Shown here piece after piece: positions 2,130-29,715 of a stretch of 64,000 nt of DNA; positions within the stretch are counted from its first letter, which is position 1, and each line of letters opens with the position of its first letter. Under the pieces are notes generated by a model, which saw only the letters and a program-made list of their open reading frames with translations, did no database searches and was not told where the DNA came from. Location of the stretch: contig MU626294.1 of NCBI GenBank assembly GCA_025603075.1, forward strand, positions 1-64,000, written 5' to 3'. Position numbers and translations under genes: made by a program. The DNA comes from Neoconidiobolus thromboides FSU 785 (Eukaryota > Fungi > Entomophthoromycota).

Positions 2130-3950
2130 ATGATATATAACCAAAGACTTTTGCTGAGTTTACCAAGTTTTAAATTAAAACCACCACTTGTTATGTCAGA
2201 AAAATTTATGCATCGGTGTGATCATTGTTATTATCGTTCTAAAGGCTGTGATCGAAAAGTACCAAAATGTAGCTATTGTAAGGAGCGGAATCTAGAATGT
2301 ACAATATCGAGACAAATCAAAAGGACAAATAAACTATACAAATTTGAAGACAAAATATCAACATTTAAAATTAATCCGTTTAAAAGCACTAATATTAGAA
2401 TGAAGATTAAGCCAACTACTAGTAAACAAGTTTCGCCAAAGAATAATGATGATGTGGAGGGTGACAATTTGTTAGTCCAAAATAAAAAAGATACCTCACA
2501 TGGGATAAAATCCAATTTATTAAAAGTAACCTCAGCTATACTTGTAATTATACCTATAAAAGGTGGAAGAGATGCTTTATTAACCTTTTTACAATATCCA
2601 CCAATGGAGAATTTTAATAATGGAGTGAAATTAATTGTTTCAATATCTACTCAAATGAGTCTACTTCTCAAAAAGCGTTACTATCTAAATTTAAATACTC
2701 TATCTTTGGCTCAATCTTATCCTTATTTCTCTTTACCATTAATTTTTCAAAGTTTAAGAAGCTACTTTAGTATCGACCATCACTTACTGCCACTATTCAA
2801 TATTAAGAGATTTGACTTCAATTCACTCAACTATGTTACCAAATTAATTATTATAGCATCTGGGTTAAATAAAGCAAAAAAAGATGATAACATGATTCAA
2901 GCAATGAGCTACTGTGAAAACGAGATATTTAATCATTTTAGGCATCCACATAGACTCAAGTACAATCTAGAAACAGTTCAATGCGTAGTTATCTTACTAA
3001 TGACTTTAAGGAACTTCAAATGGGTCTTAAAACTAACTAACAATTTTTTGTATTATTTAGCAAATAGTACGACTATATTAGGTTTAAATTTAGCTTGTCC
3101 AAAAATGAATTTAAATTTAATTATAGAGAGAAGGATGGTTTATAATGCAATCTACTTTGTATTGATGGTCTTCTCATCGGCTTCTTATTATTGTTATCCT
3201 CGATTTTATAAACAGTCCAAAAGATACAAGCTAGCAAACTCTTTAAATCAAGAACCATTCAACTCAGCTTCATGCCTTATAGATATATCCCAGCATCTCT
3301 CGATCCTATTTAATGAGTTTTTGGGCGACTACTCTTACTACTATTATGAGATAGTAGAGATCAAAGTAAAAGTAGTTGATAAAATAATGACGTTTGACCA
3401 AGTGTACAAAAGGCTCAATATAATTTTAAATAACTTTACTTCTGCTTTTATTAGCTATCAATTTATATTGAGTAAAATGAGTCAAACAAAAGTTAATGAT
3501 AAAATTTCAGTATTACTAAATGCCTATTTAAGTCACGCTAAATTCTTATTCCATTACATAAAATTCTTCTCATTCTCTTTAAGCTTATACTATCAAAGTG
3601 ATCCCACTGAATTGGATTATTGCAACTTTAACTTACCGCTCTCCTTTGATCCACAGTATTCGAAAGCTACTTTTATTCAAAAACTATTAAACGAAGCTTT
3701 ACAAGCTATAAAAAATATGATGTTTCTTCCAGTTCATTCAATCACTCATGATATGATAGGAGCTCTGTTTCAATGCGTTATTTTTATCATGAGATACCGT
3801 AGGTTTGGGGACATGGATAAAATTTCTCAGCTGTTGCTTGCTGGAAAATCAAAATTGTTGTTGCTTAGCTCATCCCCTTATTTTTCAAACTCAGCAAAAG
3901 TAAATTTGGCCTTCTTGGAAGTTGCTGAAAAGCTGATATATTCTTTGTAG
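2130..3950 (+). CDS. Zn(II)2Cys6 binuclear cluster transcription factor
   Basis: Intronless 606 aa ORF; CDHCYYRSKGCDRKVPKCSYCKERNLEC fits C-x2-C-x6-C-x6-C-x2-C-x6-C; long helical C-terminal region typical of fungal TFs. True start may be the Met at 2193. Confidence 0.85.
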   Translation: MIYNQRLLLSLPSFKLKPPLVMSEKFMHRCDHCYYRSKGCDRKVPKCSYCKERNLECTISRQIKRTNKLYKFEDKISTFKINPFKSTNIRMKIKPTTSKQVSPKNNDDVEGDNLLVQNKKDTSHGIKSNLLKVTSAILVIIPIKGGRDALLTFLQYPPMENFNNGVKLIVSISTQMSLLLKKRYYLNLNTLSLAQSYPYFSLPLIFQSLRSYFSIDHHLLPLFNIKRFDFNSLNYVTKLIIIASGLNKAKKDDNMIQAMSYCENEIFNHFRHPHRLKYNLETVQCVVILLMTLRNFKWVLKLTNNFLYYLANSTTILGLNLACPKMNLNLIIERRMVYNAIYFVLMVFSSASYYCYPRFYKQSKRYKLANSLNQEPFNSASCLIDISQHLSILFNEFLGDYSYYYYEIVEIKVKVVDKIMTFDQVYKRLNIILNNFTSAFISYQFILSKMSQTKVNDKISVLLNAYLSHAKFLFHYIKFFSFSLSLYYQSDPTELDYCNFNLPLSFDPQYSKATFIQKLLNEALQAIKNMMFLPVHSITHDMIGALFQCVIFIMRYRRFGDMDKISQLLLAGKSKLLLLSSSPYFSNSAKVNLAFLEVAEKLIYSL

Positions 3951-4680
3951 CTATATTTTTAAGTTTCTGCCCGGTGCAGTATTTTTCCTGTATAGAAAAT
4001 TAGACCAGTAATAAATAATGATATTAGATTTTAATTTATTTAGCTATTTTTACATTATTGAAAAAGCAGCAACCTCCTAAATGATTTGTTAGTAAAATAC
4101 CTAAAGAGAAGCAGTTGACAGAAAGTAGACAGACCTATAAGGTGATATTTTCCACTTTTTTATTTGTTATTAATTAAGCTATGGTTCAGGTTACTCTTTC
4201 GCACATTTCATTTTATAAGAGAAGGCATATAAATGTTTTTCTCCTAATATCATTTTTTTATAGTACGTTCTAATTCAATGAACACAAAACCATTCGATCT
4301 TTAACCTTTTTAAATAAATCAATAACATTAATAATGTTTTAAATAAACACTTATAAGAATGGCCCCTCGGTTTATATTAGTTCCATCTTTTATATTTTGA
4401 CTCAACATCCGTATTATACAAGGCCACATTATTTAATATTTACGATTGAAAATTGTACAGATTTAATCAAATATTCAAATGTGACATGATACTTTAGTTT
4501 TTTAACTAATTATTAGTTGATGTTTTAAGAAATAAGTTAATACTTATACAAGTGTATATTAAGGATGAAAAACTAGAATTGTATTTTCAGTTAAGTTATT
4601 CAATTTAAATATTGCGTTTTATTTATAAATATAAACTTTAAAAGTAAAAAAAGCCATATAGATAAAAGGCATGAAGCTAT

Positions 4681-4989
4681 TTAAAGCCCAAGTCCAAGCC
4701 CAGATAAAAGTCCTCCAGCTACCGGTATACTGGAAAGCATGCCACCGGATCCCTCATCGCTACCACCTCCTCCTAATAGCCCACCAACAACTGGGATACC
4801 AGAAAGCATACCGCCACCTCCCCCACCTCCCCCTAAAATACCTCCTAATAACCCACCAAGGAGATCACCTCCACCAGCGGAGGGTGCTTCTTTGGCTGCA
4901 CCATGATCACTGTGTCCGGCATCTCTTCTGTTTATAGACATGGCGCTAAGAGAATTTAAAGCAAGGAATAAGATAAAGTTCAACTTCAT
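4681..4989 (-). CDS. Small secreted Gly/Leu-rich precursor, family A (copy A)
   Basis: 102 aa; signal-peptide-like N-terminus, RR dibasic site, GGLL/GGIL repeats; paralog at 14822-15067; TATA box upstream. Confidence 0.85.
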   Translation of the reverse strand: MKLNFILFLALNSLSAMSINRRDAGHSDHGAAKEAPSAGGGDLLGGLLGGILGGGGGGGGMLSGIPVVGGLLGGGGSDEGSGGMLSSIPVAGGLLSGLGLGL

Positions 4990-5063
4990 TATTATTAGTT
5001 AATTAGTTTTTAAATAGATTATTAAATTGGATGTTTTTAGATTTCAGGTAAGATAAGGAGAGG

Positions 5064-5071
5064 TTTATATA
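5064..5071 (-). promoter_or_regulatory. Putative TATA box of gene A
   Basis: TATATAAA on minus strand about 75 nt upstream of ATG; same motif at similar distance in paralog A'. Confidence 0.5.
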
Positions 5072-5919
5072 CTAGTTTTTCTTAACATTTTATTATAAAT
5101 TTATTGTAAAACTTAATTAGTCTCAACTCCTCTTTTCCTCTTTTTTCCTAATTTTTTAGAACAATACTTGTATCTTTAATTCCTTTTTCCTCTTTTTTCT
5201 AATTACATACTAGCGATGCTAGCACTCCAATATTTTTGTGCCGCTTTTTTACTATTAAGTAAATCAATTAAGAATTCAATTTGTGACTAAAAGTTTGTTA
5301 AACTTAAACTGTTTTTATTGCATAAATTACTCAACTTTGGATTTACTAATTCGTAAATAAAGATGACTTTTATTTATAACATACTATCATTAAAATTCAC
5401 TATATTAGATAAAAAAATAGTTAATTTTTTTAAACTTTAAAAGGTATAAGCCCCCAAATGCTTTATTAGAGTAAGAAACATTAATTAATTTTTTAGATGC
5501 TCTAAATTTTATAGATTCTCAAGCACTTTGCCGATTACATAATAGATAAATAGCTTTAATTACTAAATCAAAAATCATCAGACTTCAAGATTAAAAAAGT
5601 TGAAATAATTAGATCCATTTATCTATAGTCCTTCTAGGTTATTAGGACTGTCAATTGGTTAATTTAAAGGCATATTATGTCGAATTAAATTACTACTGTA
5701 GATTTTTCTGAAGTGTTTTTAGATTAAGACAAAAAAATTATATTTTATCATACTCCTGCGAGTACAAAGCCCTTTAGCGGGTTAATAAAATTAGCTATGA
5801 TATTCAAATGTAAATTGTACTTTGTAATAAACTTTATTAATTAAATAGAAAATAATGATATCTTTTTATAAGAGGTAGCGGTTCAAGAAAAATGTAAGAC
5901 AAATGTAGTCTAAGAATGA

Positions 5920-6216
5920 CTGGGTATATCTTTCGAAAATAAACTAGAAAGCTACTACGTGGGTAAGGGGGCCATTTAGATAAATTTCGAGCTAAATACT
6001 TTATTGAGCCCTTTTAGAACTATAAGTTATGCAGCATTTCTTAAAATAGGATAACAGAATGTTTCAGGGTTATATCCCTCTTTTATTGTAAAGCAAAGCA
6101 GTAAACATTGGCAAGTATTATATGAAATTGGCCTCACAGTAAGGAGAATGGGTTTAGAAAACTTAATGGATTCAAATTTTATTCGAAATTCCAAAGTAGT
6201 GAATAAACATCCTTAA
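5920..6216 (+). pseudogene. Decayed coding relic of unknown origin in A-B spacer
   Basis: About 99 codons in one frame with only two internal stops and GC higher than flanks; no family recognised. Confidence 0.35.
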
Positions 6217-6432
6217 ATTAAAATTTCAATCCGGAATAATGTTCATGAAAATAGTCAATCAAATTGCCCAGAAAATTAAAATACACGGTACTATTAAAAA
6301 ATAGCGGGATAAATTAAAAGGAGTGGCTAAAATTAATATAACTAATAAGAATAAACTAAAAGATCTAGTAGCGTTGCTGTTACCAAATACCAAAAAATAA
6401 AAATGAAGAAAAAGAAATCAATAAAGCAAACA

Positions 6433-6440
6433 TATATAAA
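6433..6440 (+). promoter_or_regulatory. Putative TATA box of gene B
   Basis: TATATAAA about 65 nt upstream of ATG 6505; TATATAA at the equivalent place for B' (13874-13880, minus). Confidence 0.5.
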
Positions 6441-6504
6441 CAAAAGATAGACTTAATGAGTAAAATAAAAATATTTTTAATTTATTAATAATAATAACCT
6501 AAAT

Positions 6505-6822
6505 ATGAAATCAGCAACTTTGATAGTAAGCATGTTATTTAGTGGAATAATGGCTGGTACCATACAATTAGAGCGTCGTAAATCTTTTGTTGAAACCCAT
6601 CAGGAGCATGGTCATTTACCTGGAGGAAAGAATAATCCTGGATTTGGTGTGTCTTTAATCCCCCAAGTTCTATCCATTTTAGGAGGTCAAAATCCCTTAT
6701 CAATTTTAAATGGGTATAATAAAAAGGCTGATGAAAGTGAAGGTAAAGAATCACCAGCTGAAGGTGCATCCGAAGGCGGTCTATTATCTGGATTAGGTTT
6801 ATCTGGTATTTTAGGAGGTTGA
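6505..6822 (+). CDS. Small secreted precursor, family B (copy B)
   Basis: 105 aa; hydrophobic N-terminus, RRK basic site, His-rich core, C-terminal GGLLSGLGL motif shared with family A; paralog at 13490-13813. Confidence 0.85.
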   Translation: MKSATLIVSMLFSGIMAGTIQLERRKSFVETHQEHGHLPGGKNNPGFGVSLIPQVLSILGGQNPLSILNGYNKKADESEGKESPAEGASEGGLLSGLGLSGILGG

Positions 6823-8862
6823 CCTTTAATAAATTTAATTAATATTTGATATATTGATGTTTAGTTTATAAGCATATTTTATACTAATATTTCCTTTACA
6901 AAAAAAGAACTTATTGTTTTATGAAGTATTGATTTGATACTTGTTTATTTTTTTAGTAACAATACTGTATGAAATACAAACGGTTTTTATGTTGTTTCAC
7001 TTATTGCTGAATAATCAAAATAATTAATGATTTTCTTAATATAATTTATGTTATGCTCGATCATCCATAGTTGTTGCAATTAATCAATGTTTTCAACGAA
7101 TAAATAAACAACCTTGAAATCGTATAAAAAATTTGCTATGTAATTCTCTTTCCATTCGTACACATCGTAAAGTTAACGATATATTTTTTTAATATTAAAG
7201 GAGTCAAAAGCTTCTTGATATTTCTCGTATGAATAAATTAAAATTATAGATGGGAACGAAAAGGTTACAAGAGTACAAAATAATATTAAACTAAAAGAAC
7301 TGGCTTTGCTTTAAGAGGTTCTACTCACAACTGTGATGGATTTTACAAAGTTGCTTTGTAGTTGATTGTATAAATTACTACATATAAAAAACAAGGAAAT
7401 ACTGGTGATAGAAGTGATAGATATCTTATTATAAATCGATTTAGTGTAGTAGGAGTCAATAGCTTAGACCAATAGGAATAATAAATGGTAGGGCGTAAGA
7501 TCACTTTTTTAGATGAAAAATTTCAACTTGAATTTGTAATGGCTTAATTATCTTCTCAAACCTTGAGGTATTAGGATTTATCAAACAAAAAAATAATAAA
7601 GCAAAAGTGTTCTCAATGTAATTGGCAAGGTATAAGCAATAACCATAGAGGATTTCTTACGATTTACCAAGCCTAGCAATCAAGCTACTGGGATACTAAA
7701 TTATTTTAAAATAAATTTATGTCTCACAAATGTACCTTATTGAATTTTACTTTATTTTGTAAAAATTTGCCCAATATTATAGTTTATTCAATTTGTTATC
7801 TTTACTTCAAAAAAAGATGAACAAACCCCAATAAATTTTCCCAATAATAATCCAAAGCAAAAGTAACAAAGTATAAAATATTATAATACAAATCAAAATA
7901 ATTATAGCTAAAGCTATAATATTTTTGATATAAAGTCCCAAACTTTGTTTAGCTTTATTTTGAATTATTGTTGAAAAACTCAATTGCAGTTTGCTCAATT
8001 TTTTTCTTGAAAGATAAACATAAGTCAAAAATCCTGTATAATAGAATATCAAATGTAAAATTATAAACAATGTATATAAATAATGCAGTTTTCTTCAAGT
8101 GTTGTAAAAGTATAAGCTCCCAAGTGTTTATTTTTTTAGGATGAAAAAAGGAGTAAGATTAAATATTAATTGCTGGGGAAGTAAGAGTAATAAAGTTCTT
8201 TTTAACTTTTATAATAAAACCTGTGTAGCAAAAAATTCTAAACTGATTAAAAAAGTAAAATAAGTTTCCAAATAAGTATTTTGCTACGAAAAGAGTTAAT
8301 AACTTTTTGCCTCATTCTCTCCAAAATAATTCTATTCTACAATCAGAGAATGAAATAAGGCATTATAAGTTATTGCTACTCATACATTAAGCTTATAAGC
8401 AAAAAGATAGAAGAGAAGTACCAATTTAAATAAAAGGTGGAAACACGAATATTCAAATATTATTCAAACCCACTAGTTTTACTATAAAGTTATTATTTGA
8501 TCCTTAATAGATAGTAATTTTATAAATAAACGTGATCTAACATTTGATTTACCTCAAAAGTCGTTTAAAATAGTTCTAATTCTATAATTATTTTATGGTA
8601 TATATGTCTTATTAAATGCGGTAAAGCATAATATAAGATACTGAACTACTAACACTAATCGAATCTCGGGATGTTTTTAGAATTGCAACTGCAATATTTT
8701 CAGCGTTGTGGTGAAGAAAGTATTACTTTATGAGTTTACTAAATACTAAATTTTATTATGGTTCTGGTCACATGGCTATATAATTTAAAACTCGAACTCA
8801 ATAGCAAATTATGAAGAATTACCTTAATTTGGCCACTTACCTCAAAAGCGGGAAGCTCAAAG

Positions 8863-8870
8863 TATATAAA
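8863..8870 (+). promoter_or_regulatory. Putative TATA box of chitinase 1
   Basis: CAAAGTATATAA context is conserved upstream of chitinase 2 (minus strand, about 46060-46071). Confidence 0.55.
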
Positions 8871-8934
8871 CAAAGGAATGGGCAATCTAAATAAAGCTGT
8901 AAAAATTATCATTTTTATATCCCTAATATTTAAT

Positions 8935-10071
8935 ATGAAATTCGCTTCCTTCTTTTTAGTAGTCAGCTTAGCCGTCACCAGTGTTACTAGTCAAGCTCCC
9001 AGTAAAGTGGTAGTAGGTTACTTTTCAGACTGGACATTAACCCAATATCCAGTTAGCGCAATCGATTTCAGTAAAGTAACTCACATCAATTACTCTTTTG
9101 CTTTATTTGATGATAAAGGCTTTAATCCTAAAATTGGAACTGAAGGCACTTTAAAAGATTTGGTTGCTAAAGCACATAAGACTAGCACCAAGGTATCTAT
9201 CTCCATTGGTGGTTGGACCGGATCAAAATATTTCTCTCCAATGGCTGCGGATGCTAACAAAAGGAAGCAATTTATATCAAACACTGTTGCTTTTGTAAAC
9301 AAATTCAATCTAGATGGTGTTGATTTGGATTGGGAATACCCTGGAAGAAATGGGGCTGGTGGAAATATCATATCTCCAAAAGATACTGCAAACTACCTAT
9401 TATTATTAAAAGATTTACGTACTGCTTTAGGTAAGAAATTAATCACCGCTGCTGTAAGAGTACAGCCATTTGATGGTCCAAGTGGTCCATTAAATGATGT
9501 CAAAGCTTTTGTACCCTTGTTCGATTGGATTAATTTAATGTGCTATGACTTAAATGGGCCTTGGGGGGCTACTACCGGGCCATTAGGTGGATTGGACTAT
9601 CAACCAGGTAAAGGTGCGCCATTTTCTGTTAAACAGGCTGTAAAAGACTGGAGCAAGGCAGGATTTACTTATGATAAATTAGTTGTTGGTGTGCCTTTCT
9701 ATGGTTTTTCAGCAGGTGTTGGAGTTGATATGACCAATACTGATCAATATCAAAAAATCACCAACAGTAATTTGCCTGGCTATCCTTATAAAGATTTGAT
9801 CACTAAAAAGATCTTAAAGTCACCATTAGAAGCCAACAATACTGCTGGGTGGATTAGAAAATTCGATACTACGACCCAAACTCCATGGTTATTTAATAAG
9901 AATACAAAGACATTCATTGCTTATGATGATACACAATCATTAAAAGCAAAAACTAACTATATAAGATGTAACGGTTTAAGAGGAGCTATGTTATGGGCTA
10001 TGGATAACGATTATCAAAATCAATTACTCACTGCTTTACAAAATGTTCGTAGTACTGGAGGATGTAAGTGA
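8935..10071 (+). CDS. Secreted GH18 chitinase (catalytic domain only)
   Basis: Signal peptide MKFASFFLVVSLA.., SIGGW, intact DGVDLDWEYP (DxxDxDxE), MCYD and WAMD motifs. ATG 8935 matches the paralog start; the ORF-track start at 8878 is probably an extension. Confidence 0.95.
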   Translation: MKFASFFLVVSLAVTSVTSQAPSKVVVGYFSDWTLTQYPVSAIDFSKVTHINYSFALFDDKGFNPKIGTEGTLKDLVAKAHKTSTKVSISIGGWTGSKYFSPMAADANKRKQFISNTVAFVNKFNLDGVDLDWEYPGRNGAGGNIISPKDTANYLLLLKDLRTALGKKLITAAVRVQPFDGPSGPLNDVKAFVPLFDWINLMCYDLNGPWGATTGPLGGLDYQPGKGAPFSVKQAVKDWSKAGFTYDKLVVGVPFYGFSAGVGVDMTNTDQYQKITNSNLPGYPYKDLITKKILKSPLEANNTAGWIRKFDTTTQTPWLFNKNTKTFIAYDDTQSLKAKTNYIRCNGLRGAMLWAMDNDYQNQLLTALQNVRSTGGCK

Positions 10072-10580
10072 ACTAACTGATATTTTGAAGCTATTAGTAA
10101 TAATATTCATTATTCACTCCAGTAGCTAAAAACCCAAAATTAATCTAAAATTGAAGATGGAGCTTTTATGCAGTGCAATTAAATGTTCTATTTACTGATA
10201 ATAAATATTTAGTTAATAGATTGTCTTGTTAAAAAATATCTTTCGAAAGGAAGAACTTATTTAAAATATTAGCCTTTATTTTATTACCTTAAGGAGATTA
10301 TCATTTTGATTATGAATAAGTTTTTTTAGCCTGTATTTACACTATTTATGTAAAAATTGCAAAATAATTTATAAATTTTGTACACTTGGCTATTATTTTT
10401 CATTAAATACCAAATTATTTCTAATGTAATCTTTTTTCATATTCATTAAAAAAAACTATTACTAAAAATATAAAAAATTATAAACTGTTATAATAGCTAC
10501 AGTTACAATACATCATAACTACTGAGCTTAATAAATTAGCATTATATAAGTATTAATTAACATTATTTTTATTTAATAAT

Positions 10581-11576
10581 TTAAAGTGATAATATCTTTT
10601 TAACCTGAGCTAAAATAGATGCATTGATGAATAGAGTAACCATAGGAGATAATACTTTATGGATCATGATAGCAGAAACTACCCAAAAGTCAACAGTGTC
10701 GCTACGTGGAGTATCAGTAATTAATTCGTAAATCATTGTAACACCATAGGGTAAGAAGGATAGAATAAATATTAAGCAGTACATGATTGAGCGAAATGCT
10801 ACTGCCCTATATTTTTCTAAACTTGGATTAACTGCTAAATTTTCTTTTTCACTAATTGCCTGATAGCTAGATTTTTCATCACTCATATCAACTAAATAAC
10901 TTTGTGAAGATTCGTTTACTCGTCTCATAATATTATAAAATTGCCTGGAGATAGAGTAATAAAAGTAAACAGCCAGCACAGTTGGTATTAATATAACTGC
11001 GATTGTAATAAAATAATATCCTTTCAGTAAGGGATCATCCGGTTTGTAAGCCAAGTAACAATATCCTGCAGATGGCATTAAATCAAATCTATTAGTTACT
11101 GCGATCAAAATTCCTGCAAATAGTGGCAAAATCCATTGGGTCAATTGTAGTAAAAGTACGCCTCTCTTGGAAATGTTCTCTCCTTTTACGATTGTATAAT
11201 ATCTCCAGAATGCACATACCAAAGCTGAGTATAACCAGGTTATTTTACAGATTGCTGAAATTGCTGCTTCAACTTTGCATGCGGTCATATTTAGCACCAT
11301 ATAATTAGTTGATAGTTTGACAGATACCCATATGATTGTCCATGTTGCATAAATAACATCAATGATAGCTATTTGCATTACTATCATATTATCAGTAGTT
11401 TGCATCCTTTTATAAACTAGTACAGAAATCAATATTAACAAACTTGGTATTAATGATAATACGTTAGTTACTATGAATACATAGCTTACTCCTTGAGCCT
11501 GCCAACTATTAAATTTACTGAAAGGAAATGTCTCTAAATTTATTTGACTTGGATACAAAAATGAACTAGTAGTCAT
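10581..11576 (-). CDS. Class A (rhodopsin-like) 7TM GPCR 1
   Basis: Seven hydrophobic segments; TM1 Asn, TM2 AIID, TM3 Cys with Arg 25 residues later (FWRY), ECL2 MPSAGYC, TM6 FLP, TM7 SPMVT. Confidence 0.85.
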   Translation of the reverse strand: MTTSSFLYPSQINLETFPFSKFNSWQAQGVSYVFIVTNVLSLIPSLLILISVLVYKRMQTTDNMIVMQIAIIDVIYATWTIIWVSVKLSTNYMVLNMTACKVEAAISAICKITWLYSALVCAFWRYYTIVKGENISKRGVLLLQLTQWILPLFAGILIAVTNRFDLMPSAGYCYLAYKPDDPLLKGYYFITIAVILIPTVLAVYFYYSISRQFYNIMRRVNESSQSYLVDMSDEKSSYQAISEKENLAVNPSLEKYRAVAFRSIMYCLIFILSFLPYGVTMIYELITDTPRSDTVDFWVVSAIMIHKVLSPMVTLFINASILAQVKKILSL

Positions 11577-13190
11577 CTTATTTATTTCTTGTTGTAAACT
11601 TGATATTAACTTATAAGCGCTTTAATTAAAATAAATAAAAATATTTTTAAATGATTGTTTCAATCCAACTATTTATATTATTTTTGTAACTATCTTATTA
11701 ACCCTCCACTTTACCTCTTACTTTAGTAACTCTAAAATTTATTCTTGCTTCCTAGGCTTCGAACCTCTCATTTTATTTTTAAGCCTAGCTGATTCATATT
11801 ATTTTTTTCATGGGTACCTTAATCATGATATTATATATTCTAGCTAATATTCGTATGTTGTGTTTCAAGATATTCGTACCCGGTAGTAATACTAAGTTAA
11901 TACCAATATATTTATTATTTTATAATTCTAAATTTCATAAACAAATATCCCTATTTCTAATTTACTATTTTTGGAAATTATGAACTCATAATTAAAAATC
12001 AAAAGTTTATTAAATTTTTAAATGAAGATTATATACTCTAATTTAATTGACTTAGCCTTTGTCTTACATTGTTTATTCTACAATATTAAATAGATACATT
12101 TCGAAAGTTATTATTTTATTAAGGCTGTTTAATAAATTATTAGAAACCAACTTTAATTTACATTTACTGTTGAATATGACAGGATTATAGATTCTCATTT
12201 TTCTTACTTAATTATGTAATTGAATTTATAGACTAAATAAGATATCTTTATATGTTTTGTTACAATAAAAATTAATATTATAGTTAAATAAAGCATATCA
12301 TGGCTTTAAAATCGTGACTCTTAAGTTGTATATTTGTGTTGAGACTTTAGTACTTTAAATAAGGTAATCTTTATTTTTTAACATGTTTTTAATAAAACCT
12401 AAAACTATTCTATAGTAAAAATAGCTTAAATTCGTCTTTAAACTCCCAACTACTTTAAAACTAAATTCCAGTTTTAGTATATTTACATGAAAATTTTATA
12501 ATAAGAGGGTTTATTATCCATAAAATACTTCTGTACTATATAGTATTTTAAATATCTCAATCCTATATCAAATACTATGCTATGAGAGGATTCTAATTTT
12601 ATGTATTCTTGAGTTCAATGATTAAAAGTCCGCTTACTTCAATAGAGCAGACCACTCTTCTACTAACTATTGTATTCAAAAGCAATGAACTGAACAAAAA
12701 GCTGGACAATACCTTGTTTTTTTAGCTTGTTAACATCATTTAATATTTAAATAAAAAATCAAAATGAAATATGTTAACTAATGCTTTTTTATCTTAATTC
12801 TTTAAATATGCCTAATGCATCTAACTATTTTTCATTTAATTTAACTTTACAACCCCTTTATTTTAGCTTATAGCTTTTATTTTTAAACAAAGTTTTAAAG
12901 CCATTAGTCAGTTTGTAAATATCGAGCAATAAATAACTTGTAAAATATACTATGTTATTTATAAAGGTTATTTGTTGATTTGATTGACGTGTCTTTATTT
13001 TAAATACATGTCAGTGTAGAGCAAAATCTTATATAAAAATAAACAAATGATAAATCAATTAAAGCATGTAATCAAAGCAATAGCAAAATACAGTTTAGAA
13101 TAAGGAAAGTTGAAACAAGCTACACTTTAATGTACCAATTTAAGGGACTCATCTGTTATTTTAAGTTTAAATGATGCTTTTTTCATAATT

Positions 13191-13285
13191 GGAAATATTT
13201 TTTGGCTTTATCACTTTTTCTATCTTTTAAGTGCTATTCGAGTGGAAAAGGGTAGTAAAATTGTTAAACACAAAAATACATCTCC
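13191..13285 (+). mobile_element. MITE family copy 4
   Basis: Consensus match; flanked by AATT (13187-13190) and ATAT (13286-13289). Confidence 0.85.
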
Positions 13286-13289
13286 ATAT

Positions 13290-13388
13290 GGGGATGTATT
13301 TTTGTGTTTAACAATTTTACTAACAAATTTTCCACTTAAATAGTGTTTAAAAAACGGAAAAAGTAATGAAGTCAAAACAAACGCTCCC
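13290..13388 (-). mobile_element. MITE family copy 5
   Basis: Reverse consensus match; ATAT on both sides; forms a ~200 bp palindrome with copy 4. Confidence 0.9.
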
Positions 13389-13489
13389 ATATGTTTAAAT
13401 GATTTTAAAGTAAAAAAACTCTCTTTATATTAAAATTTGGATTTATTGAAAAAAAATCAGTGATCAATAAATTATATATCGAATTATAC

Positions 13490-13813
13490 TTAAATAATAC
13501 CACCCAAAAGACTGGATAGACCTAATCCAGATAATAAACCACTATTAGATGGACCTTTTTCTGTATACTGCATCCCCTCCTTTGTATCAGCCTCTTTGTT
13601 ATATCCATCTAAAATAGATAAGAAGCTTTGACCTTTTAAAATAGACAGGGCTTGAGGAATCAAGGATATACCAAACCCAGGGTTGTTTTTTCCTCCAGGT
13701 AAATGCCCATGTTCTTGGTGGGTTTCAATAAAGGATTTACGGCGTTCTAGTTGAACTTCACCAGGCATTATCCCACTAACAAGTATGACTGTTATCAGAT
13801 TTATGACTTTCAT
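13490..13813 (-). CDS. Small secreted precursor, family B (copy B')
   Basis: 107 aa paralog of 6505-6822, near-identical core QLERRKSFIETHQEHGHLPGGKNNPGFGISLIPQ. Confidence 0.85.
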   Translation of the reverse strand: MKVINLITVILVSGIMPGEVQLERRKSFIETHQEHGHLPGGKNNPGFGISLIPQALSILKGQSFLSILDGYNKEADTKEGMQYTEKGPSNSGLLSGLGLSSLLGGII

Positions 13814-14583
13814 TTAAGTTAATATTTGACAATATGTTTAAATAAAATTCTTACCATTCATATTCTCTATTGCTTATATAGTTTTCATTATTTAAATATT
13901 TAGTTTTAGTTAAGTTTTAAAGCTATTATTTATTGTTTTTTAATTTTTCTCTGATACCTTTCATACCATAATGTTTGAACCTGGTAGGGCATCTCAGCTA
14001 CTGCCTCTTATATAAATGATTTTGGGAACAGGAACCCTTAGTTTACTCCTCTAAATCCATACAACTATATCACTTTTAGTTTTAGTGGTTGTTGATCTAT
14101 AAAGAAGAAATGTAAAAGGTTTTTTAATTTGGAAATTTTTTTAATATAGCTGTAAATATTTAAATGTTATTTTGGTTTAGCTGTAGTATACTATGCCATT
14201 GATTTATCATATCAAGCATTTTTGATGTCAGACACTTTCTAGTCATTTAGATATAACTGCTGTAATTATATTGTGACTTAATTAACTGTTTGTTTAAGAA
14301 TATAAATTTACTAAAAATTTTGATGAATCTTGGTGATTAGGCTTAAAGAAATGAACTATACAAATAAATGCTTCCAAAAAATACCACTAATTAGGTAGAA
14401 ATAGATCCGCAATAGGTGTGTTAATTTATTTATCATTATTTACCATAATTAACCTCGGTCCTTTGGCTACAACTAGTATATTAATAATGTATAATATTCA
14501 GCCCATCTAAAATTAATCAATGTAATAACATTTTAATTAAATTAAGCTAAATAATACTTAATGCGAGTTAATTGAGTTTTAGC

Positions 14584-14610
14584 TTAATTAACTTAATTAA
14601 CTTAATTAAC
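14584..14610. repeat. (TTAATTAAC)x3 tandem repeat
   Basis: Three perfect 9-mers in the divergent promoter between B' and A'. Confidence 0.9.
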
Positions 14611-14736
14611 AACAAAAATGGATAAAAATACAAAATATCAGTATATCTGGTAGATAATTAGGAGAACAGAGGGAAAGGGGAGTAAAAAGGTATGCTTATC
14701 GTAATTTATTAAACAAAAAGAAAAGAAGAAAAGTAG

Positions 14737-14744
14737 TATATAAA
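14737..14744 (+). promoter_or_regulatory. Putative TATA box of gene A'
   Basis: TATATAAA about 78 nt upstream of ATG 14822. Confidence 0.5.
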
Positions 14745-14821
14745 TAATTGTTTATCGGGATTAAAATTCAAAAACATACAAATAACTTAATTTACTACCA
14801 TTACTATCCTTAATAATAACA

Positions 14822-15067
14822 ATGAAATTAAACTTTATTTTATTTCTTGCTGTAAGTTCAATTAGCAGTATGCCTATGGCCAGAAGAGATGGTGGAGACG
14901 ATCTTCTTGGAGGATTATTAGGCGGTATATTAGGAGGAGGAGGAGGAGGAGGAGACTTGTTAGGAGGTTTATTAGGAGGCGGAGGTAGCAGTGAGGGTTC
15001 TGGTGGTATGCTTTCTAACATACCAGTTGCTGGAGGTCTCTTATCTGGACTTGGACTTGGACTTTAG
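14822..15067 (+). CDS. Small secreted Gly/Leu-rich precursor, family A (copy A')
   Basis: 81 aa paralog of 4681-4989 with the same MKLNFILFLA start and IPVAGGLLSGLGLGL end. Confidence 0.85.
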   Translation: MKLNFILFLAVSSISSMPMARRDGGDDLLGGLLGGILGGGGGGGDLLGGLLGGGGSSEGSGGMLSNIPVAGGLLSGLGLGL

Positions 15068-15443
15068 ATAAGTTTAATTCTTTTTATTAAACCAGCTTCC
15101 ATACTTTCAAAGTTAACATTTAATAAATAAAACGGAATATAAAATGTAATATCTCGATTTTGTTATCATTTTAAATTTTTTATAATTAAACAACCTTTAA
15201 GTATTATCAAATTTTAAGTATCACTAATTGATGTTAAAAATAACATTTTATATTATAGATAAGTTCTTGTAATTAAATCCGTTTCTTTTTGTTAAGTGCT
15301 ACAAATAGGATAATCATTGATCTATAAAATAAAATATTTTTTTAAAGAGACATGTAGTAAGTACTACCATGTCATTCTAAAGCTAAGCCTATAGCTATAA
15401 AGGCTTAATTATGCGAATTTTTAAGTGAATTTTTTTTAAATAC

Positions 15444-15542
15444 AGAGATGTTTTTCTCGGTTTTATCACTTTCTCCATTTTTTAAGCACTATTTGAGCGG
15501 AAAGATTGTTGATAAAATTCTTAAACAAAAAAGTACATCCCC
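15444..15542 (+). mobile_element. MITE family copy 6
   Basis: Consensus match; flanks ambiguous (ATAC/TATA), so the TSD is not clean. Confidence 0.8.
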
Positions 15543-15958
15543 TATAATGTTTAGAAAAAGCATCAAAAATACAGAATCGTAATTTGAAGTATGAATATTA
15601 ATACTATAGTATTAATATAATAGCTTATTTTAGTTATATTATGTTGTTGTTTTAACCTTATTAAAATCGTCGGACATAAAGTTTATTACTTTGCTTATCA
15701 TAAAATAGTCTTATAGTATTTAGGTATGTAATTCGCGCATATCTTATTGTCCAAATAATTGAAATCGTAAATCACAATATTACTTATCATATCAAACACT
15801 GCTATTTTAAATACCTCTATGTCGACAGCAATGATGTTTTAATAAGCTAGTACCCAACGCTCCTTAATTTCTAAAATACGCAAATTAAATTGCATAAAAT
15901 GAGGCTACGCATTCATAGTGATATATTTTATGAAACACTAACTTTTTTAATTGTGACT

Positions 15959-19416: not shown

Positions 19417-20280
19417 ACGTCGTTAAAATTTGATTTATTACTTGGTCTTCTATGAGAAGATACGCTCAACTTATTGGATCCAATTAAACTGCTTGAGTTG
19501 CGCTTTTCGAGCAAATGTTTGTTCAAAGTTGTAAGTAGGGGTATAAGGTATAGTTTGGCTTATTCACCTTACAATCAAGAGGAACTTGAAGGATATTATT
19601 ATTACCAAGAAGAGCTTATTAAGGAAAATGTAACTTTAATAAAGCATATAGATTCAAAAGATAAAAATCTAGAATATTTAGGTTATTGCCCAAATACAAG
19701 GTATATATGGGAGTGTCTTTTTTAACTTCATTATTTTTTCCATTTTTTAAGTGCTATTTAAGCGGAAAATTTGTTAGCAAAATTCTTAAACACAAAAATA
19801 TATCACCATATGATATAAATATGTCAAATATAAGGATAGTTATAGTGGCAATGTTTGGTATGAGTATAATAATGATGACTGAGATTATTACGATGACAAC
19901 ACTATTGCTATAGAATTTGATCTACCAAAGTTAAAAAAACCAGTTTTGGATCATACTACTTGTGAACCAGGGCCAATGCTTTTTGAAAAATACATAAAAC
20001 AAGCTAATCAATTTGAGTTTATTAAAGATAGTATCTATTAAAAATTCTATTATCTAAATTTATATAAATTAAATTCGCTCAATATATATGTTAGAAATAG
20101 ATAGGATTTGGATGGATCAGGCATTGTCAAAACTAAATCTAGATTAAAGTCATCAAATTTAGAATCTGATTTCTATTATGTCTCTAATATTCACAACGAT
20201 ATATAATTTACCTTATCTTAAAATCGAAAATATATGGAGACTTTAATGTTAGTTTTTAATAGATTGGTGATTTAGAGCAG
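19417..20280 (+). pseudogene. Decayed gene (possibly F-box-like N-terminus) interrupted by a MITE
   Basis: Removing the MITE plus one ATAT (103 nt) joins 19417-19708 and 19812 onward into one frame with scattered stops; the N-terminus LL*EDTLNLLDPIKLLELRFSSKCLFK is F-box-like. Confidence 0.55.
19709..19807 (+). mobile_element. MITE family copy 7
   Basis: Consensus match; ATAT at 19705-19708 and 19808-19811. Confidence 0.9.
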
Positions 20281-20999: not shown

Positions 21000-21096
21000 G
21001 GGAATGTTTTTGGGTTCATTACTTTTCCATCTTTTAGGTGCTATTTGTGTGGGAAAACTGTTAGTAAAATTCTTAAATACAAAAAAACATCCCTAC
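21000..21096 (+). mobile_element. MITE family copy 8
   Basis: Consensus match; flanks ACAT / ATAT. Confidence 0.8.
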
Positions 21097-21900: not shown

Positions 21901-22548
21901 TAAAAAATTATAAACAATAGTTAACATCATTAATATCTAAGCGGATAAACCTGTTAGAACAAATACTGCACTATACCTGTTAATACTAAAATTAAGACTC
22001 CCTTTTACATTGTCATTTAAAAAGGTAAATGATTAATAAATACTTTTTTTTTTTAACTCCGTTACGTTTGACATTAAAATATATACATGTCTCCTCTAAT
22101 TTTATTTGTTCATTTTCAGTATTAAAATCTAAGAAATTTCCAAACATAGAAATAAAGTAAAGACTTGAATATTTGCCATGAGTTGAAGTAGTTTTTACTC
22201 AAGATTTTGAGTGATAAAATTCCCAATTTTTAACAAAAGTGGACAAAGTTGTAAACTGGAGATATTCATACTTTTTATGATATGTTTTAATTAATGCAGG
22301 ATAGTAATATGCAGAGATAAGTATAATATTATAAATTAATGATTACAATTGAAACCTATTTAAATATTATCAGTTATTTAAAGTTCAACAGTTTTGTAAA
22401 AATAAACTCAAATTTTAATAAATAACCAAAGTCATTTTATACTTTTTGTTCATAAGCGTAAAAGAGGAGAAGTTGGAACATATAGTTTAAAGTGTTTATT
22501 TTTTTGATAACAATTGTTAACAATATTTCAAAATAATGTTTAGTATAT

Positions 22549-22647
22549 GGGAGTGTTTTTTTTGATTTCATTATTTTTTCCATTTTTTAAGCGCTATTTG
22601 AGTGGAAAATTTATTAGTAAAGTTCTTAAGCACAAAAATACATCCCT
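22549..22647 (+). mobile_element. MITE family copy 9
   Basis: Consensus match; ATAT at 22545-22548 and 22648-22651. Confidence 0.9.
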
Positions 22648-23291
22648 ATATGGAAGAATTTGAAAACTGGGTTAAAACTGTAAATATTTAGTGTTTTATT
22701 TTGATCTAAGTGTAAAATTTAAGTGACTAATTTAGAATGAAGTAAAAAATAACCAGAGAATGTCTTCCCATTTAGTTGTTTTTTATATTCTAGTTTGGTA
22801 TTTAGCAAATGCTATAATGGATTTCTTAAATAGAAAAAATACCCCTTGGTTTTTATACTATTAGTATTTATTTTTGCACTTTTGCAATAAATAAAATCGG
22901 GAAAAAGTTGAACCTTGGGTTTAAATTAGCGCATGTTATTAAATTTCTCCTACGATTATCGTATTACACTCATAATTGCAGTTTCTTCTATCAAAACCTT
23001 AAACCGATTTCTAATCATATCGGAAAAAGGATTATTTTTACATCCTTACATATTTTATAGTGCGGGGCTTTTTGAATTTCTTTATTATTAAACTGTTATT
23101 CTCGAGATTCGGTAAAAGTCAATGTAAAAAAAATCCCATTCAATTTTCTAGCTCAAATTTAAGCAAGCATCTTATTCAAGACTACCAAACCCGAATTATA
23201 ACTGACTTTAATCAATCAAAATTTAAATAGAGTATATAAACTTGAAATAAGAAGCATGAATCAATTAAATATATAAAAATTAAATACTGTA

Positions 23292-24635
23292 ATGAGTAAT
23301 AGTACGATAAATATACCAATGTCTGGTATACAAGACAAGACAACCGCAAATTTGTCTTTTGATTCTGTTACAACATTTAAAGAAACAAGCGATCCTACAA
23401 CAGATGAAAATATAGAGGAAGATCAAAATGTTGATAGTATCCAAGGTTGGATAGTAGTAATAGCAAGTTTTTTCAATTTATTTATTATTATGGGAATAAC
23501 TCTTAGTTCTGGTGTGTTTGTTCAATATTATGCTGATAACTTATTTAAAAATAAAGTACCTTTATCTACGTTAAGTTTTATTGGTACCATAAGTACTTCA
23601 CTTCAAACATTATTGGCTGTGTTTACAGGAAAACTAGCTGATAAATTAGGGTATCGTAATTCTATCCTGCTTGGCTCAGCTATTTACGTTATTGGTCTAC
23701 TATTAGCTTCTTTTAGTACTGAAGTTTGGCATCTATTTTTAACTCAGGGTGTTTTGGTGGGTATTGGTGGTGCTATTGCATTTGTACCAGCTGTAAGTGC
23801 ACCTGCCCAATGGTTTAAAAAGTACATTGGTTTAGCTACAGGTGTTGCTGTAGCTGGTTCTGGGATTGGTGGTTTGGTATTGAGTCCAGTGACCCAAACT
23901 GTTTTGAACAATTTGGATTTTAGATGGGCATTAAGAGTATTAGCTATTATTGCTTTTGTTATATTACTTATTACTTCTTTTTTCATAAAAGAAAGAGTAA
24001 AGGCTAAGAACGGAGGTTCTTGGTTAGATTTTACTAGATTTAAAGATCGTAGATTTCTTGCTTTATTCTTTGGAGGTTTCTTATGCTCTTTTGGTTATCT
24101 TGTTCCGTTTTTACTTATGGGTAAATATGCTCAATCCATCGGCCTTACTGAAAGCCAAGGATCTATCTTAATTGGATTATTGAATGGAGGGTCTGCCATT
24201 GGAAGGGTTGCATTAGGGAGCTTAGGTGATCGTTTTGGTAGAATTAATATTCTTTTTATTTGTATTGGGCTTGCCTCTCTCTTCTGCTATTTTATATGGA
24301 CATTCTCATTTACTTTCGGCGTGCTATTAGCTTTCAATATACTATATGGGATGGCGGCTGGAGGTTATATCTCAATGCTACCCGTAGTCACAGTTCAATT
24401 GTTTGGTGTAGAAGGTATTGCAAGTACCAACGGTTTACTTTATTTTGGCTCCGGTATTCCTAATTTAGTTGGCACTCCTATTGCATCGGCAATATTAGCT
24501 GCTTCGACCTCTAATCCAGTTAAGCCTAATTATGTTCCTGTTATTATGTATGCAGCTACCTCTGCTATATTGGGATCATGTCTTTTCTTTGTTCTTAAGC
24601 TTACGGTCAATAGAAAATTACTCGCACGAGTATAA
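23292..24635 (+). CDS. MFS transporter, monocarboxylate transporter (MCT/Mch)-like
   Basis: 447 aa, about 12 TM; GWIVVIASF, GKLADKLGYR, QWFKKYIGLATG and GDRFGR motifs. Confidence 0.9.
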   Translation: MSNSTINIPMSGIQDKTTANLSFDSVTTFKETSDPTTDENIEEDQNVDSIQGWIVVIASFFNLFIIMGITLSSGVFVQYYADNLFKNKVPLSTLSFIGTISTSLQTLLAVFTGKLADKLGYRNSILLGSAIYVIGLLLASFSTEVWHLFLTQGVLVGIGGAIAFVPAVSAPAQWFKKYIGLATGVAVAGSGIGGLVLSPVTQTVLNNLDFRWALRVLAIIAFVILLITSFFIKERVKAKNGGSWLDFTRFKDRRFLALFFGGFLCSFGYLVPFLLMGKYAQSIGLTESQGSILIGLLNGGSAIGRVALGSLGDRFGRINILFICIGLASLFCYFIWTFSFTFGVLLAFNILYGMAAGGYISMLPVVTVQLFGVEGIASTNGLLYFGSGIPNLVGTPIASAILAASTSNPVKPNYVPVIMYAATSAILGSCLFFVLKLTVNRKLLARV

Positions 24636-25091
24636 GTTTAAAATCTAATTAAATTGATACTGTTCTGATTTATCATTTGTCAGTTATCAGTTATCAATTA
24701 ATTTTTTGTAAATAAATAACGATCAAGATTACTATAATATCTACTTAACAGTTGAATACTTTAATTTTATCATTTATAAAGTTAACTATTAAGTATAATA
24801 AGATATAGACCAATATCATATACTCGAATTAAATTCAACAATAACCCTGATACTTATAACTTAGTCATTCATAAGCTAACCTCTCTCTTAATCTTTATTA
24901 TTATAAGTTTACCCTTCGCTTAAAATTGACATAAGGATTAAACCATTTAATAGCAAACCCATATAATTAAATTGCTATTTATTTTGAAATATCCTATATT
25001 TTTTGGTCTAATAACTGGTGCATATTAGCAGGAGAAATAAGTCCATTATTTATCAAATATCTCAAGTCAGCTTCTAAAGTAGTAAATATAT

Positions 25092-25191
25092 CAGGATGTA
25101 TTTTTTTTGTTTAAGAATTTTACTAGCAACTTTTCCATTTAAATAACATTTAAAAAAATGGAAAAAGTGGTGAAACCAAAAAAACACCCCT
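25092..25191 (-). mobile_element. MITE family copy 10
   Basis: Reverse consensus match; ATAT at 25088-25091 and 25192-25195. Confidence 0.88.
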
Positions 25192-25871
25192 ATATAGAAA
25201 TACCTCATAATAATTATACGAACAATTAAGCCTATAATTTTATTAGAGAATGTTAAATAATAAGAATCTTTAAAGTGTTATAATGTACGAGATAAAGGAA
25301 GATAACAAAGGAATAAAAAATACAGTATAGAAATATTGATATCTGATTTAGCTTAAAATTTTTATTAGCCCCCTTTTCTTCATATATTTTATCAAAAAAA
25401 ACAATAGGAAATTAAAGTAAAAAAGAGAAATTTTTTATTTGACATTTTAAATGTTCACCTTTCGGGTTTTTCATGAATATAAACACTTTAATAAGATATC
25501 TTTCTTATTCAAAGTATTATATTTCTAATGAAAATATAGAAAAAAATCCAAGTTCGAAATATGTTATAAAAAGATCAATGATTTCATTCGAATATTACAA
25601 CTACATAAAATTAATATTTAACATTTAAGTAATCTAAGTATTTTATAAGAGTTTAAATAATAACATAATTTAGATTTGAACACTTTCATTAAGTTATAGA
25701 ATACTATTGTAATTACTAGGTTTTAAATTACTCTTATTTTTTAGAAAAAAATATAAACTAATCAAATGAATTAAATAAAAACTTGATACCGGAAATTAAA
25801 GTGATGGAAGTCAAAGTAAAAACAAAAACAAAAAAATCAGCCTTTATCTTATTTCAACTATAAATCCAAGA

Positions 25872-27313: not shown

Positions 27314-28330
27314 ATGTCTATTCCTGCCGAATATGTTGAGTTACCTTATATGGATTCAAATTTACCCGAACTATATACATGGCAAGCGCTACTGGTGCCA
27401 ACCAGTTTTATGTTATTTAATTTAATAGCTATGATACCTAGTTTAATTATCTTGATAGTAGTTATAAGAACAAAATCCTTACAAACAACGGATAATTTAA
27501 TGACCTTACAAATGGTATTTGTAGATATAGTATTTGCTGGTTGGGTCTTAGTATGGTACACCTTAAAATTAGCCTCAGGTTATAGGTTATGGGATTTTTA
27601 TACTTGCCAAATGGAAGGCAGTATGATTTTAATTTGTGGTTTTACTTGGCTTATGTGTGGTACCTTTTTAGGATTTTATCGCTTCCGTAAAGTTATAGGC
27701 TCTAAATCTACTCATGTTACTGATCGAGTGATGTTAATAATTCAATATGGTTTATGGTTACCCTCTATAATATTTGCATGTGTTATTGGATTGAGTGGTG
27801 ATTTTAGAATTATGCCTTCTTTTGCTTATTGTTATATAAGATATGTACCTGATGCTCCTCAAACTCACATACATTTATGGGCTACTTTAGCTATTTTAAT
27901 CATTCCAGTAATTGCTAGTGTTTATTTTTATTGGGCAATAACAGCTAAATATTGTACCATTGTTCGACAGCTTATTGAAGCTCCTGTACCCACTTATTTA
28001 CCTTCTGGTCATGCACGTAAATCTAATACAGAAGGTAGTACTGCTCCATTAACTACAATTACCGTTCGTCCAACTCCAAAATCCCATCTTAGAAAAGTAG
28101 CTTTTAAATGTGTGCTATATGCACTTGTATTTATTTTATGTTTTTTACCAATGACATGTACCATTATTTATGAATTGGCTACGTCTCAGGTTCGTTCACC
28201 TACCATTGATGCTATCTGTATCTCCCTCGTTATGCTCCATAAAATTATGTCGCCAATGATTACTTTATTTATTAATGATACTATCAATCACCAAATTCGT
28301 GTATTATTAGGATATAATCCTATAAGATAG
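27314..28330 (+). CDS. Class A (rhodopsin-like) 7TM GPCR 3, paralog of GPCR 1
   Basis: Intronless 338 aa; TTDN..M Q..D TM2, CQMEG..FYRF TM3, MPSFAYC, FLP, HKIMSPMITLFIN. Confidence 0.85.
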   Translation: MSIPAEYVELPYMDSNLPELYTWQALLVPTSFMLFNLIAMIPSLIILIVVIRTKSLQTTDNLMTLQMVFVDIVFAGWVLVWYTLKLASGYRLWDFYTCQMEGSMILICGFTWLMCGTFLGFYRFRKVIGSKSTHVTDRVMLIIQYGLWLPSIIFACVIGLSGDFRIMPSFAYCYIRYVPDAPQTHIHLWATLAILIIPVIASVYFYWAITAKYCTIVRQLIEAPVPTYLPSGHARKSNTEGSTAPLTTITVRPTPKSHLRKVAFKCVLYALVFILCFLPMTCTIIYELATSQVRSPTIDAICISLVMLHKIMSPMITLFINDTINHQIRVLLGYNPIR

Positions 28331-28821: not shown

Positions 28822-28918
28822 GATGTAAATATTTTTTTTGACTTCATCACTTTTTCCATTTTTCAAGCGCTATTTGAGTGGAAAGACTATTAATAAAATT
28901 GTTAAAAAATATATCCCC
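28822..28918 (+). mobile_element. MITE family copy 11
   Basis: Consensus match; ATAT at 28818-28821 and 28919-28922. Confidence 0.85.
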
Positions 28919-29218
28919 ATATAAAATGCTCAAAACCTTTTTTAAATTTCATAGTGTGTTTTGAGCTTATAATTAATTATAAAAAGTAAAAATTATATTT
29001 TAAATATTTTAAAATTAAATAAAAATTAAATTATTAATAAAAAAACATTTAGTAATATAAATAAAGCCAAACAGAAAGTTATTTTGCACATACATTAGCT
29101 TATTATAATGATAAACTATTAGAATTTTTGTACCAATCAAAATTTTAAAAAAACTCGTCAGTACAAAAATTTATAAAATTTAGTATACAATATAAGTAAA
29201 GTTAAATCAATAATATAT

Positions 29219-29316
29219 GGGGATGTATTTTTGGGTTTAACAATTTTACTAACAATTTTTCCACTCAAATAGCGCTTAAAAGGAGGAAAAAATAATAAAG
29301 TCAAAAAAACACCCCC
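29219..29316 (-). mobile_element. MITE family copy 12
   Basis: Reverse consensus match; flanks ATAT / GTAT. Confidence 0.9.
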
Positions 29317-29622
29317 GTATAATATCTTAAAAAATAAACTTATCATAACAGAGTATCAAAATATACAATTAACATAACCATCAAATATTTTTATTTTAAA
29401 TTGACTAGGAATAAAAAAAGTAACAAACTAAAAAATAGTTAGTTTTTTATTAAATATTCATAAGTTATATAATAAGCTATTATATGTGCAAAATATCCCT
29501 GGTTTTCAGCTTTATTTATATTAATAAGTATTTTTTTATTTGATTTGATTAAAATATTAAAACATTTTTTATTTTTTATAGCCCAATTCTTGATAATTGT
29601 TCACAAGCTTAAACGTGCATTT

Positions 29623-29715
29623 GAGGCTGTTTTTTTTGGTTTCATTGTTTTTCTATTTAAGCACTATTTAAGTGGAAAGATTTTAGTAAACTCTTAATCG
29701 AAAAAACGCATCCCC
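29623..29715 (+). mobile_element. MITE family copy 13
   Basis: Consensus match; ATTT on both sides (29619-29622, 29716-29719). Confidence 0.82.

Follow-up and report, generated by a model that had tools for sequence, protein, structure and literature searches.

Inverted duplication of a divergent pair of small-peptide genes in Neoconidiobolus thromboides, and the two undescribed protein families to which these genes belong

Precursors in which a conserved prepro leader precedes a divergent mature peptide are found in the dermaseptin-type superfamily of frogs and in the superfamilies of cone snails. Leptoglycin, a frog peptide of 22 amino acids (aa) that is uncharged and rich in Gly and Leu, is active on Gram-negative bacteria (PMC10876013, PMC7554965). 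Among the small secreted products of fungi, the Kex2-processed repeat proteins (KEPs), which include the Ustilago repellent Rep1, are defined by three or more tandem repeats with a minimum length of 8 aa, between KR, RR, KK or RK sites for Kex2 (PMC7329392, PMC6339444). Here we describe four small genes, named A, B, B' and A', that are present in a 64-kb stretch of DNA (bases 1-64000 of contig C37, referred to below as the window) of Neoconidiobolus thromboides FSU 785, the AT-rich assembly of which comprises 24.6 Mb in 799 contigs. To our knowledge, hardly any small secreted protein of the Entomophthoromycotina has been characterised, and hydrophobins and many of the effector families of Dikarya are absent from these fungi. 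A first-pass annotation of the window had read the four genes as an inverted duplication of a two-peptide secreted system enclosing a chitinase and a G protein-coupled receptor (GPCR). The results presented below point to two new gene families that are restricted to a lineage and were duplicated in an ordinary way, and not to a demonstrated new system.

The four genes are intact open reading frames (ORFs) and have the mirror-image order A(-)/B(+) ... B'(-)/A'(+) that had been proposed (Table 1). Their coding parts form inverted repeats. Thus, 315 nt of B (6505-6819) match 13499-13813 in B' with 73% nucleotide identity, and the A stretches 4664-4785 and 4901-4997 match 14963-15084 and 14814-14910, respectively, in A' with 75-79% identity. 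The B and B' proteins are 70% identical (E 1e-44), and those of A and A' are 85% identical over the aligned residues, indels making up 21 residues. The synonymous divergence (dS, calculated according to Nei-Gojobori) is 1.02 for A/A' and 1.03 for B/B'. These equal values, combined with the mirrored order, fit a single inverted duplication of an A-B unit, and the idea that the gene pair was duplicated as a unit is therefore upheld. Also, B and B' are sisters in a maximum-likelihood tree of the B family (support 93/94). The intergenic regions are 1515 bp (A-B) and 1008 bp (B'-A') long and their middle parts cannot be aligned. Together, these data strongly indicate that the ~10 kb structure is an old (dS ~1) inverted segmental duplication of a divergent small-peptide gene pair. 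The ratio of nonsynonymous to synonymous divergence (dN/dS) calculated by the same method is 0.09 for A/A' and 0.20 for B/B', which indicates that both pairs are under purifying selection.

Table 1. Positions in the window of the four peptide genes, their flanking elements and neighbouring genes
Feature	Position	Strand	Description
Gene A	4681-4989	-	102-aa pre-pro-peptide; intact ORF
Gene B	6505-6822	+	105-aa pre-pro-peptide; intact ORF
Gene B'	13490-13813	-	107-aa paralog of B; intact ORF
Gene A'	14822-15067	+	81-aa paralog of A; intact ORF
28-nt purine-rich element of A	5126-5153	-	137-164 nt upstream of ATG
28-nt purine-rich element of A'	14656-14683	+	139-166 nt upstream of ATG
TATA box of A (TATATAAA)	5064-5071	-	75-82 nt upstream of ATG; colinear with TATA box of A'
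Conserved 3' untranslated region block of A	4609-4646	-	87% identity to 15102-15140 (E 4e-8)
Conserved 3' untranslated region block of A'	15102-15140	+	Counterpart of 4609-4646
GH18 chitinase	8878-10071	+	E 8e-71; DxxDxDxE motif; signal-like start; in duplication spacer
Class-A GPCR (7tm_1)	10581-11576	-	E 4e-15; in duplication spacer
Zn2Cys6 transcription factor	2130-3950	+	Adjoins A; full CX2CX6CX6CX2CX6C pattern

The promoter motifs had been proposed to be duplicated together with the genes. For A and A' this is supported by a colinear TATA block located ~75-95 nt upstream of the ATG, and by a 28-nt purine-rich element that is unique in the genome to the upstream regions of these two genes and had no matches in shuffled sequences. 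For the other pair, the match between the regions upstream of B and B' was not significant. A TATA box of its own precedes each gene, and the members of a pair are separated by 1.0-1.5 kb. These observations argue for a separate core promoter per gene and for one clearly constrained element that is private to A and A'. The public annotation of A corresponds to an identical 102-aa protein (P0006). The public model of A' (P0007, 77 aa) contains an upstream exon encoding MDKNTKYQYIC in place of the signal-peptide exon (window 14602-14900), and its splicing skips the TATA box as well as those signal-peptide codons which are common to A' and A; it is therefore probably a mis-model.

Copies of a palindromic family of miniature inverted-repeat transposable elements (~200 bp) flank the B'-A' pair at 13170-13410 and 15445-15546. 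Further copies (~10) were observed at 477-680, 19705-19812, 21007-21093, 22526-22654, 25088-25195, 28824-28922, 29215-29320, 29629-29717 and 59249-59339. As the family has ~12 copies in the window, these elements were set aside as a cause of the duplication.

The products of all four genes start with a signal-peptide-like N-terminus, the 8-aa Kyte-Doolittle maximum of the h-region being 2.4-2.9 with small residues at positions -3/-1, and all contain an RR pair at residues 21-25, in agreement with the earlier description. A, A' and B' each have this single dibasic pair, and B has an extra KK at residues 73-74. All four lack Cys and contain 14-33% Gly; beyond the leader they are negatively charged or neutral (net charge -5 to 0). 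The A product (RR at residues 21-22, 31% Gly, net charge ~-5) contains two ..LS.IPV.GGLL units and a GLGL end; that of B contains an LERR↓K site, a His-rich core (residues 26-78) and a GGLLSGLGL tail. A gene for a P-domain, kexin-type convertase is present in the genome, which makes the suggested Kex2-type processing feasible. From these features we infer secretion, kexin maturation and an extracellular role for each peptide alone. The products would enter the secretory pathway and shed their signal peptide, after which a propeptide of ~3-8 residues would be removed at the kexin-type site (RR↓D in A, LERR↓K in B). The released peptide of 60-85 aa would be Cys-free, anionic or neutral and mostly disordered or helical, and would act extracellularly, either on membranes or on surfaces. 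An AlphaFold2 model of B based on an 11-sequence alignment has three short helices at low confidence (pLDDT 50); in the ESM Atlas the model of A was poor and the families had no usable match. With moderate confidence, we favour the reading that A and B are independently acting, kexin-matured, Cys-free, Gly/Leu-rich secreted peptides with a putative role at membranes or surfaces. Like the KEPs and Ustilago Rep1, they would be small secreted fungal products with a signal-like leader and a kexin-type dibasic site. They differ, however, in that they lack tandem repeats bounded by Kex2 sites and have one dibasic site, close to the leader, and the parallel with Rep1 drawn previously is for this reason abandoned.

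The B family is represented in this genome by B, B' and a third gene, B'', located on contig C42 at 73.7 kb. A full HMMER scan of 1.84 billion representative proteins identified as relatives three clusters of hypothetical proteins of Entomophthora muscae and one Logan contig (P0011, SRR18067481). Two other matches, P0012 and P0013, were rejected because they are unrelated repeat proteins for which weak repeated matches sum up. Alignment of B, B' and B'' with E. muscae P0008-P0010 and P0014-P0017 and the second gene of E. muscae contig QTSX02005087.1 (locus L031) revealed 18 invariant columns, including F28, T31, H32, H35, G36, H37, L38, P39, G41, N44 and P45, which outline a core F..TH..HGHLP.G..NP. 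We define the family by a leader that ends in LERRK and a core of the form F..TH.EHGHLPG..NP ... Q ... G ... L..YN..AD. Of 11 family members from two genera, 10 retain the dibasic site; in these the leader ends in LERRK, with the invariant core directly after it. The constrained core encompasses ~55 aa from the dibasic site onward and includes the invariant His cluster. In the comparison of B with B', the proportions of nonsynonymous and synonymous differences over core residues 21-58 are 0.04 and 0.73, respectively. The tails vary: they are Gly/Leu-rich in N. thromboides and Asn/His-rich or composed of PPPPMYG repeats in E. muscae, indicating that a conserved core has been joined to very different low-complexity tails. 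In P0009 and P0016 a long proline-rich PPPPMYG-repeat tail takes the place of the Gly/Leu tail. A C-terminal LG.(S/E)D.PI.G is common to B'' and one E. muscae clade, which suggests that this tail type is ancestral. On contig QTSX02005087.1, two B genes are positioned head to head, 2953-3426 (-) and 10001-10324 (+), ~6.5 kb apart, and both end in LG.SD.PIIGKY; this arrangement is an independent local inverted duplication within the B family.

Neither A nor B members gave a Pfam match, even at E values up to 1, and a profile search of the PDB gave 0 matches. Exact-protein look-ups found no other assembly with an identical A or B protein. Neither family had a match in the literature, a search for the His-rich motif of B found no papers, and the B-gene locus tags were not found in the supplements of E. 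muscae transcriptome papers. The alignment and these searches strongly indicate that the B family is undescribed and is conserved from Neoconidiobolus to Entomophthora, i.e. across the Entomophthoromycotina. A Cys-free peptide family with an invariant His-rich motif that extends to the "zombie-fly" fungus Entomophthora constitutes a concrete and cheap target.

A profile search of the genome detected eight A-type loci. Besides A and A', these are six intact genes in a tandem array on contig C42 (G000:C42:111892-126398; locus labels L013-L018, L006, L007, L010 and L011). The array genes are all on the minus strand and encode proteins of ~101-185 aa. The array contains no B gene and is located 38 kb or more from B''. 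In its members the leader is followed by PL(Q/G)RR-like sites, and most A-family members have a leader with a PLQRR-like end and a GGLL...GGGSDGGLLE...GPIGGL block. Like A and A', the longer array members repeat ..LS.(I/L)P..G units, and GVGV or GLGL forms the C-terminus of some; the two longest have three or four of these units and a GVGV end. When 5.8 billion proteins were subjected to word searches, only proteins of this genome were A-type relatives among the best 8000 candidates. Provisionally, the A family has thus been seen only in N. thromboides.

The G(G/S)LLSGLGL tail that had been noted in A, A', B and B' occurs in no other gene of the 24.6-Mb genome. A back-translated GLLSGLGL pattern matched these four genes and, by chance, the antisense strand of a transporter gene on contig C8; the reversed control pattern matched three times. 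The Leu and Gly codons of the tail differ between A and B, which argues that the tail is kept at the protein level and does not result from gene conversion. Viewed more broadly, a hydrophobic C-terminal module (.IP..GG / LLSGLGL) is common to both families. In a profile-profile comparison (hhalign) only the leaders of A and B aligned, with a probability of 10%. A and B would accordingly have the same leader type and a short tail module in common, and unrelated cores. In combining a similar (Q/E)RR leader with unrelated cores they resemble the dermaseptin and cone-snail superfamilies, although here the leader likeness is weak, a short tail is also common to both, and the taxon is another one.

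The closest functional analogy for A may be leptoglycin. Residues 42-63 of A are identical to it at 17 of 22 positions (hand count; sequence according to PMC10876013), and a similar block is present in A'. Like A, leptoglycin and the plasticins are uncharged or acidic Gly/Leu peptides without Cys. Because the match lies in low-complexity sequence it is an analogy at best and not homology, and antibacterial activity of A is only putative; fungal peptides nearly copying an antibacterial peptide of frogs would be a neat case of convergence. Several points weigh against the view that A and B are independently acting secreted peptides of this kind. The leptoglycin likeness may mean nothing in sequence of such low complexity, and A is a fungal precursor of 102 aa without cleavage sites flanking the block. 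The mature peptides would be anionic, unlike most antimicrobial peptides. The signal peptides and cleavage sites were judged by simple heuristics, from hydrophobicity and the -3/-1 rules. The species-specificity of A is provisional since only the best 8000 low-complexity candidates were scored. Finally, none of the three B genes in this genome is more than 4 kb away from an A-like ORF. In the case of B'' it is a candidate ORF of 105 aa with a signal-like start, C42:69646-69963 (+) (L008:3646-3963), located 3.7 kb upstream. Its product terminates in a 30-aa peptide that follows a KR site and contains ..IPIVG...GLGL. The candidate ORF is a singleton without paralogs in the genome, and a cytochrome P450 gene is situated between it and B''. 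This one observation keeps a loose association of A with B alive, and some functional coupling between them might exist.

Other explanations must be set against these data. It is hardly credible that the four ORFs are not genes at all, being either chance ORFs in GGN-rich DNA or the complement of proline-rich antisense frames that are the true products. Such antisense ORFs do exist at 4739-4906 (+) and 14761-15021 (-), but they are unlike each other in start and length. In addition, the sense frames have dN/dS values of 0.09-0.20 with saturated synonymous sites, conservation extends to the start codon, the leader, the TATA box and the upstream element, the last two at a fixed distance from the sense ATG, and B has homologs across genera. 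The low dN/dS and the constrained core of B strongly indicate that A, A', B and B' are real, selected genes of undescribed small-protein families. A more serious alternative concerns the tail, which might be a glycosylphosphatidylinositol (GPI) attachment signal that is removed, in which case A and B would be small GPI-anchored or wall-bound glycine-rich proteins. This would account for two unrelated families having only their tail in common, and Sclerotinia provides a precedent in SsGSR1, a glycine-rich wall protein with a GPI anchor (PMC10269696), which likewise has a signal peptide, a Gly-rich body and a hydrophobic C-terminus. The four proteins combine an N-terminal signal with a hydrophobic C-terminus (Kyte-Doolittle mean of the last 15 residues 1.27-1.85), and the small S/G residues upstream of it, as read from the sequence, are candidate omega sites. 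However, the tail is only weakly hydrophobic and repeats the internal ..LS.IPV.GGLL unit of A, and the spacer in B is very short. Nor is the tail general in the families: several A-type paralogs have charged or non-hydrophobic ends or carry D or K in the tail, and of the three E. muscae B subfamilies, two have no hydrophobic tail and one terminates in ..IIGKY. GPI attachment is a reasonable alternative for the tail, although we consider it unlikely.

A different possibility is that A and B are halves of one co-expressed system in which both peptides are required, for example as a two-peptide toxin or as components of a mixed coat on the surface. The head-to-head layout is preserved in both copies; as it was inherited from one duplication, however, it counts as one observation only. 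The tail, unique in the genome to A and B and maintained at the protein level, the A-like-tailed ORF 3.7 kb from the third B gene, and the restriction of both families to the same two contigs of this genome would also fit. Against this, the six A-type genes of the array are at least 38 kb away from any B gene, the promoters are separate, with the conserved element private to A and A', and five B loci of E. muscae have no A-type ORF within 10 kb, B being paired there with B. These five loci were viewed with 10-kb flanks in a gene-sparse genome, which limits the view. Comparison with the class IIb bacteriocins, to which the first-pass annotation had likened the pair, leads in the same direction. 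The likeness consists of two small adjacent genes and a GxxxG-type Gly spacing, and GxxxG motifs are expected by composition at 14-33% Gly. The differences concern leader, charge, gene organisation and kingdom: A and B are eukaryotic, lie on opposite strands and each have a TATA promoter of their own, their products start with a Sec-type signal and a dibasic site and not with a double-glycine leader, their peptides are anionic or neutral and those of the bacteriocins cationic, and they are not adjoined by immunity or ABC-transporter genes such as those with which the bacteriocin genes are co-transcribed. We conclude that the bacteriocin analogy fails and that an obligate two-peptide mechanism is not supported; that A and B are halves of one system in the wider sense is quite improbable. 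Even less credence can be given to the suggestion that A or B is a ligand of the enclosed class-A GPCR. Apart from physical proximity, the B core is strongly constrained between genera, as would be expected of a ligand with a conserved receptor. Yet at least 34 loci of the 24.6-Mb genome match 7tm_1 above the Pfam cut-off and only one of these paralogs is near A/B genes. The second GPCR of the window (27314-28330) has no A or B gene adjoining it, and the 10-kb surroundings of the B genes in E. muscae contain no called GPCR gene. In a bolder version, to which we attach little weight, the B family would be a peptide signal or metal-binding factor specific to the Entomophthoromycotina, the invariant N-terminal His cluster of which, exposed by kexin, engages a conserved partner, possibly one of the class-A GPCRs that are unusually numerous in these fungi, and the tail of A and B would be a sorting or assembly tag. 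If true, early-diverging fungi that kill insects would have a system of peptide signalling or delivery that was hitherto unknown. Independently acting secreted peptides remain the reading that we prefer.

The identities assigned earlier to the neighbouring genes were confirmed by the GH18 and 7tm_1 scores given in Table 1 and, for the Zn2Cys6 gene, by Cys spacing: its Zn_clus Pfam score is 20.8 bits at a cut-off of 21, and all six Cys are canonically spaced. A functional tie of the peptides to the GPCR and the chitinase was not borne out. Lack of conservation of this linkage had been named beforehand as one part of what would refute the proposal, and neither 7tm_1 nor GH18 genes were detected near the A-like or B'' loci of contig C42, or elsewhere on that contig. 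Linkage with receptor and chitinase is thus a single occurrence. Loci of GH18 number about 20 or more in the genome, and contig C37 has four GH18 matches; the second GH18 gene of the window (44572-45990, -) is, like the second GPCR, not adjoined by an A or B gene. The chitinase and GPCR in the spacer are probably bystanders, and together with the Zn2Cys6 gene they are neighbours by position only. The number of 7tm_1 loci constitutes a large class-A GPCR expansion for a fungus. Some of these loci are locally clustered, with four within 10 kb on contig C237 (C237:4935-14406), and others are located on contigs C75, C187, C218, C39 and C260. The window further contains a gene of the GH5 cellulase family at 62200-63426 (-) and a gene for an MFS transporter at 23292-24635 (+).

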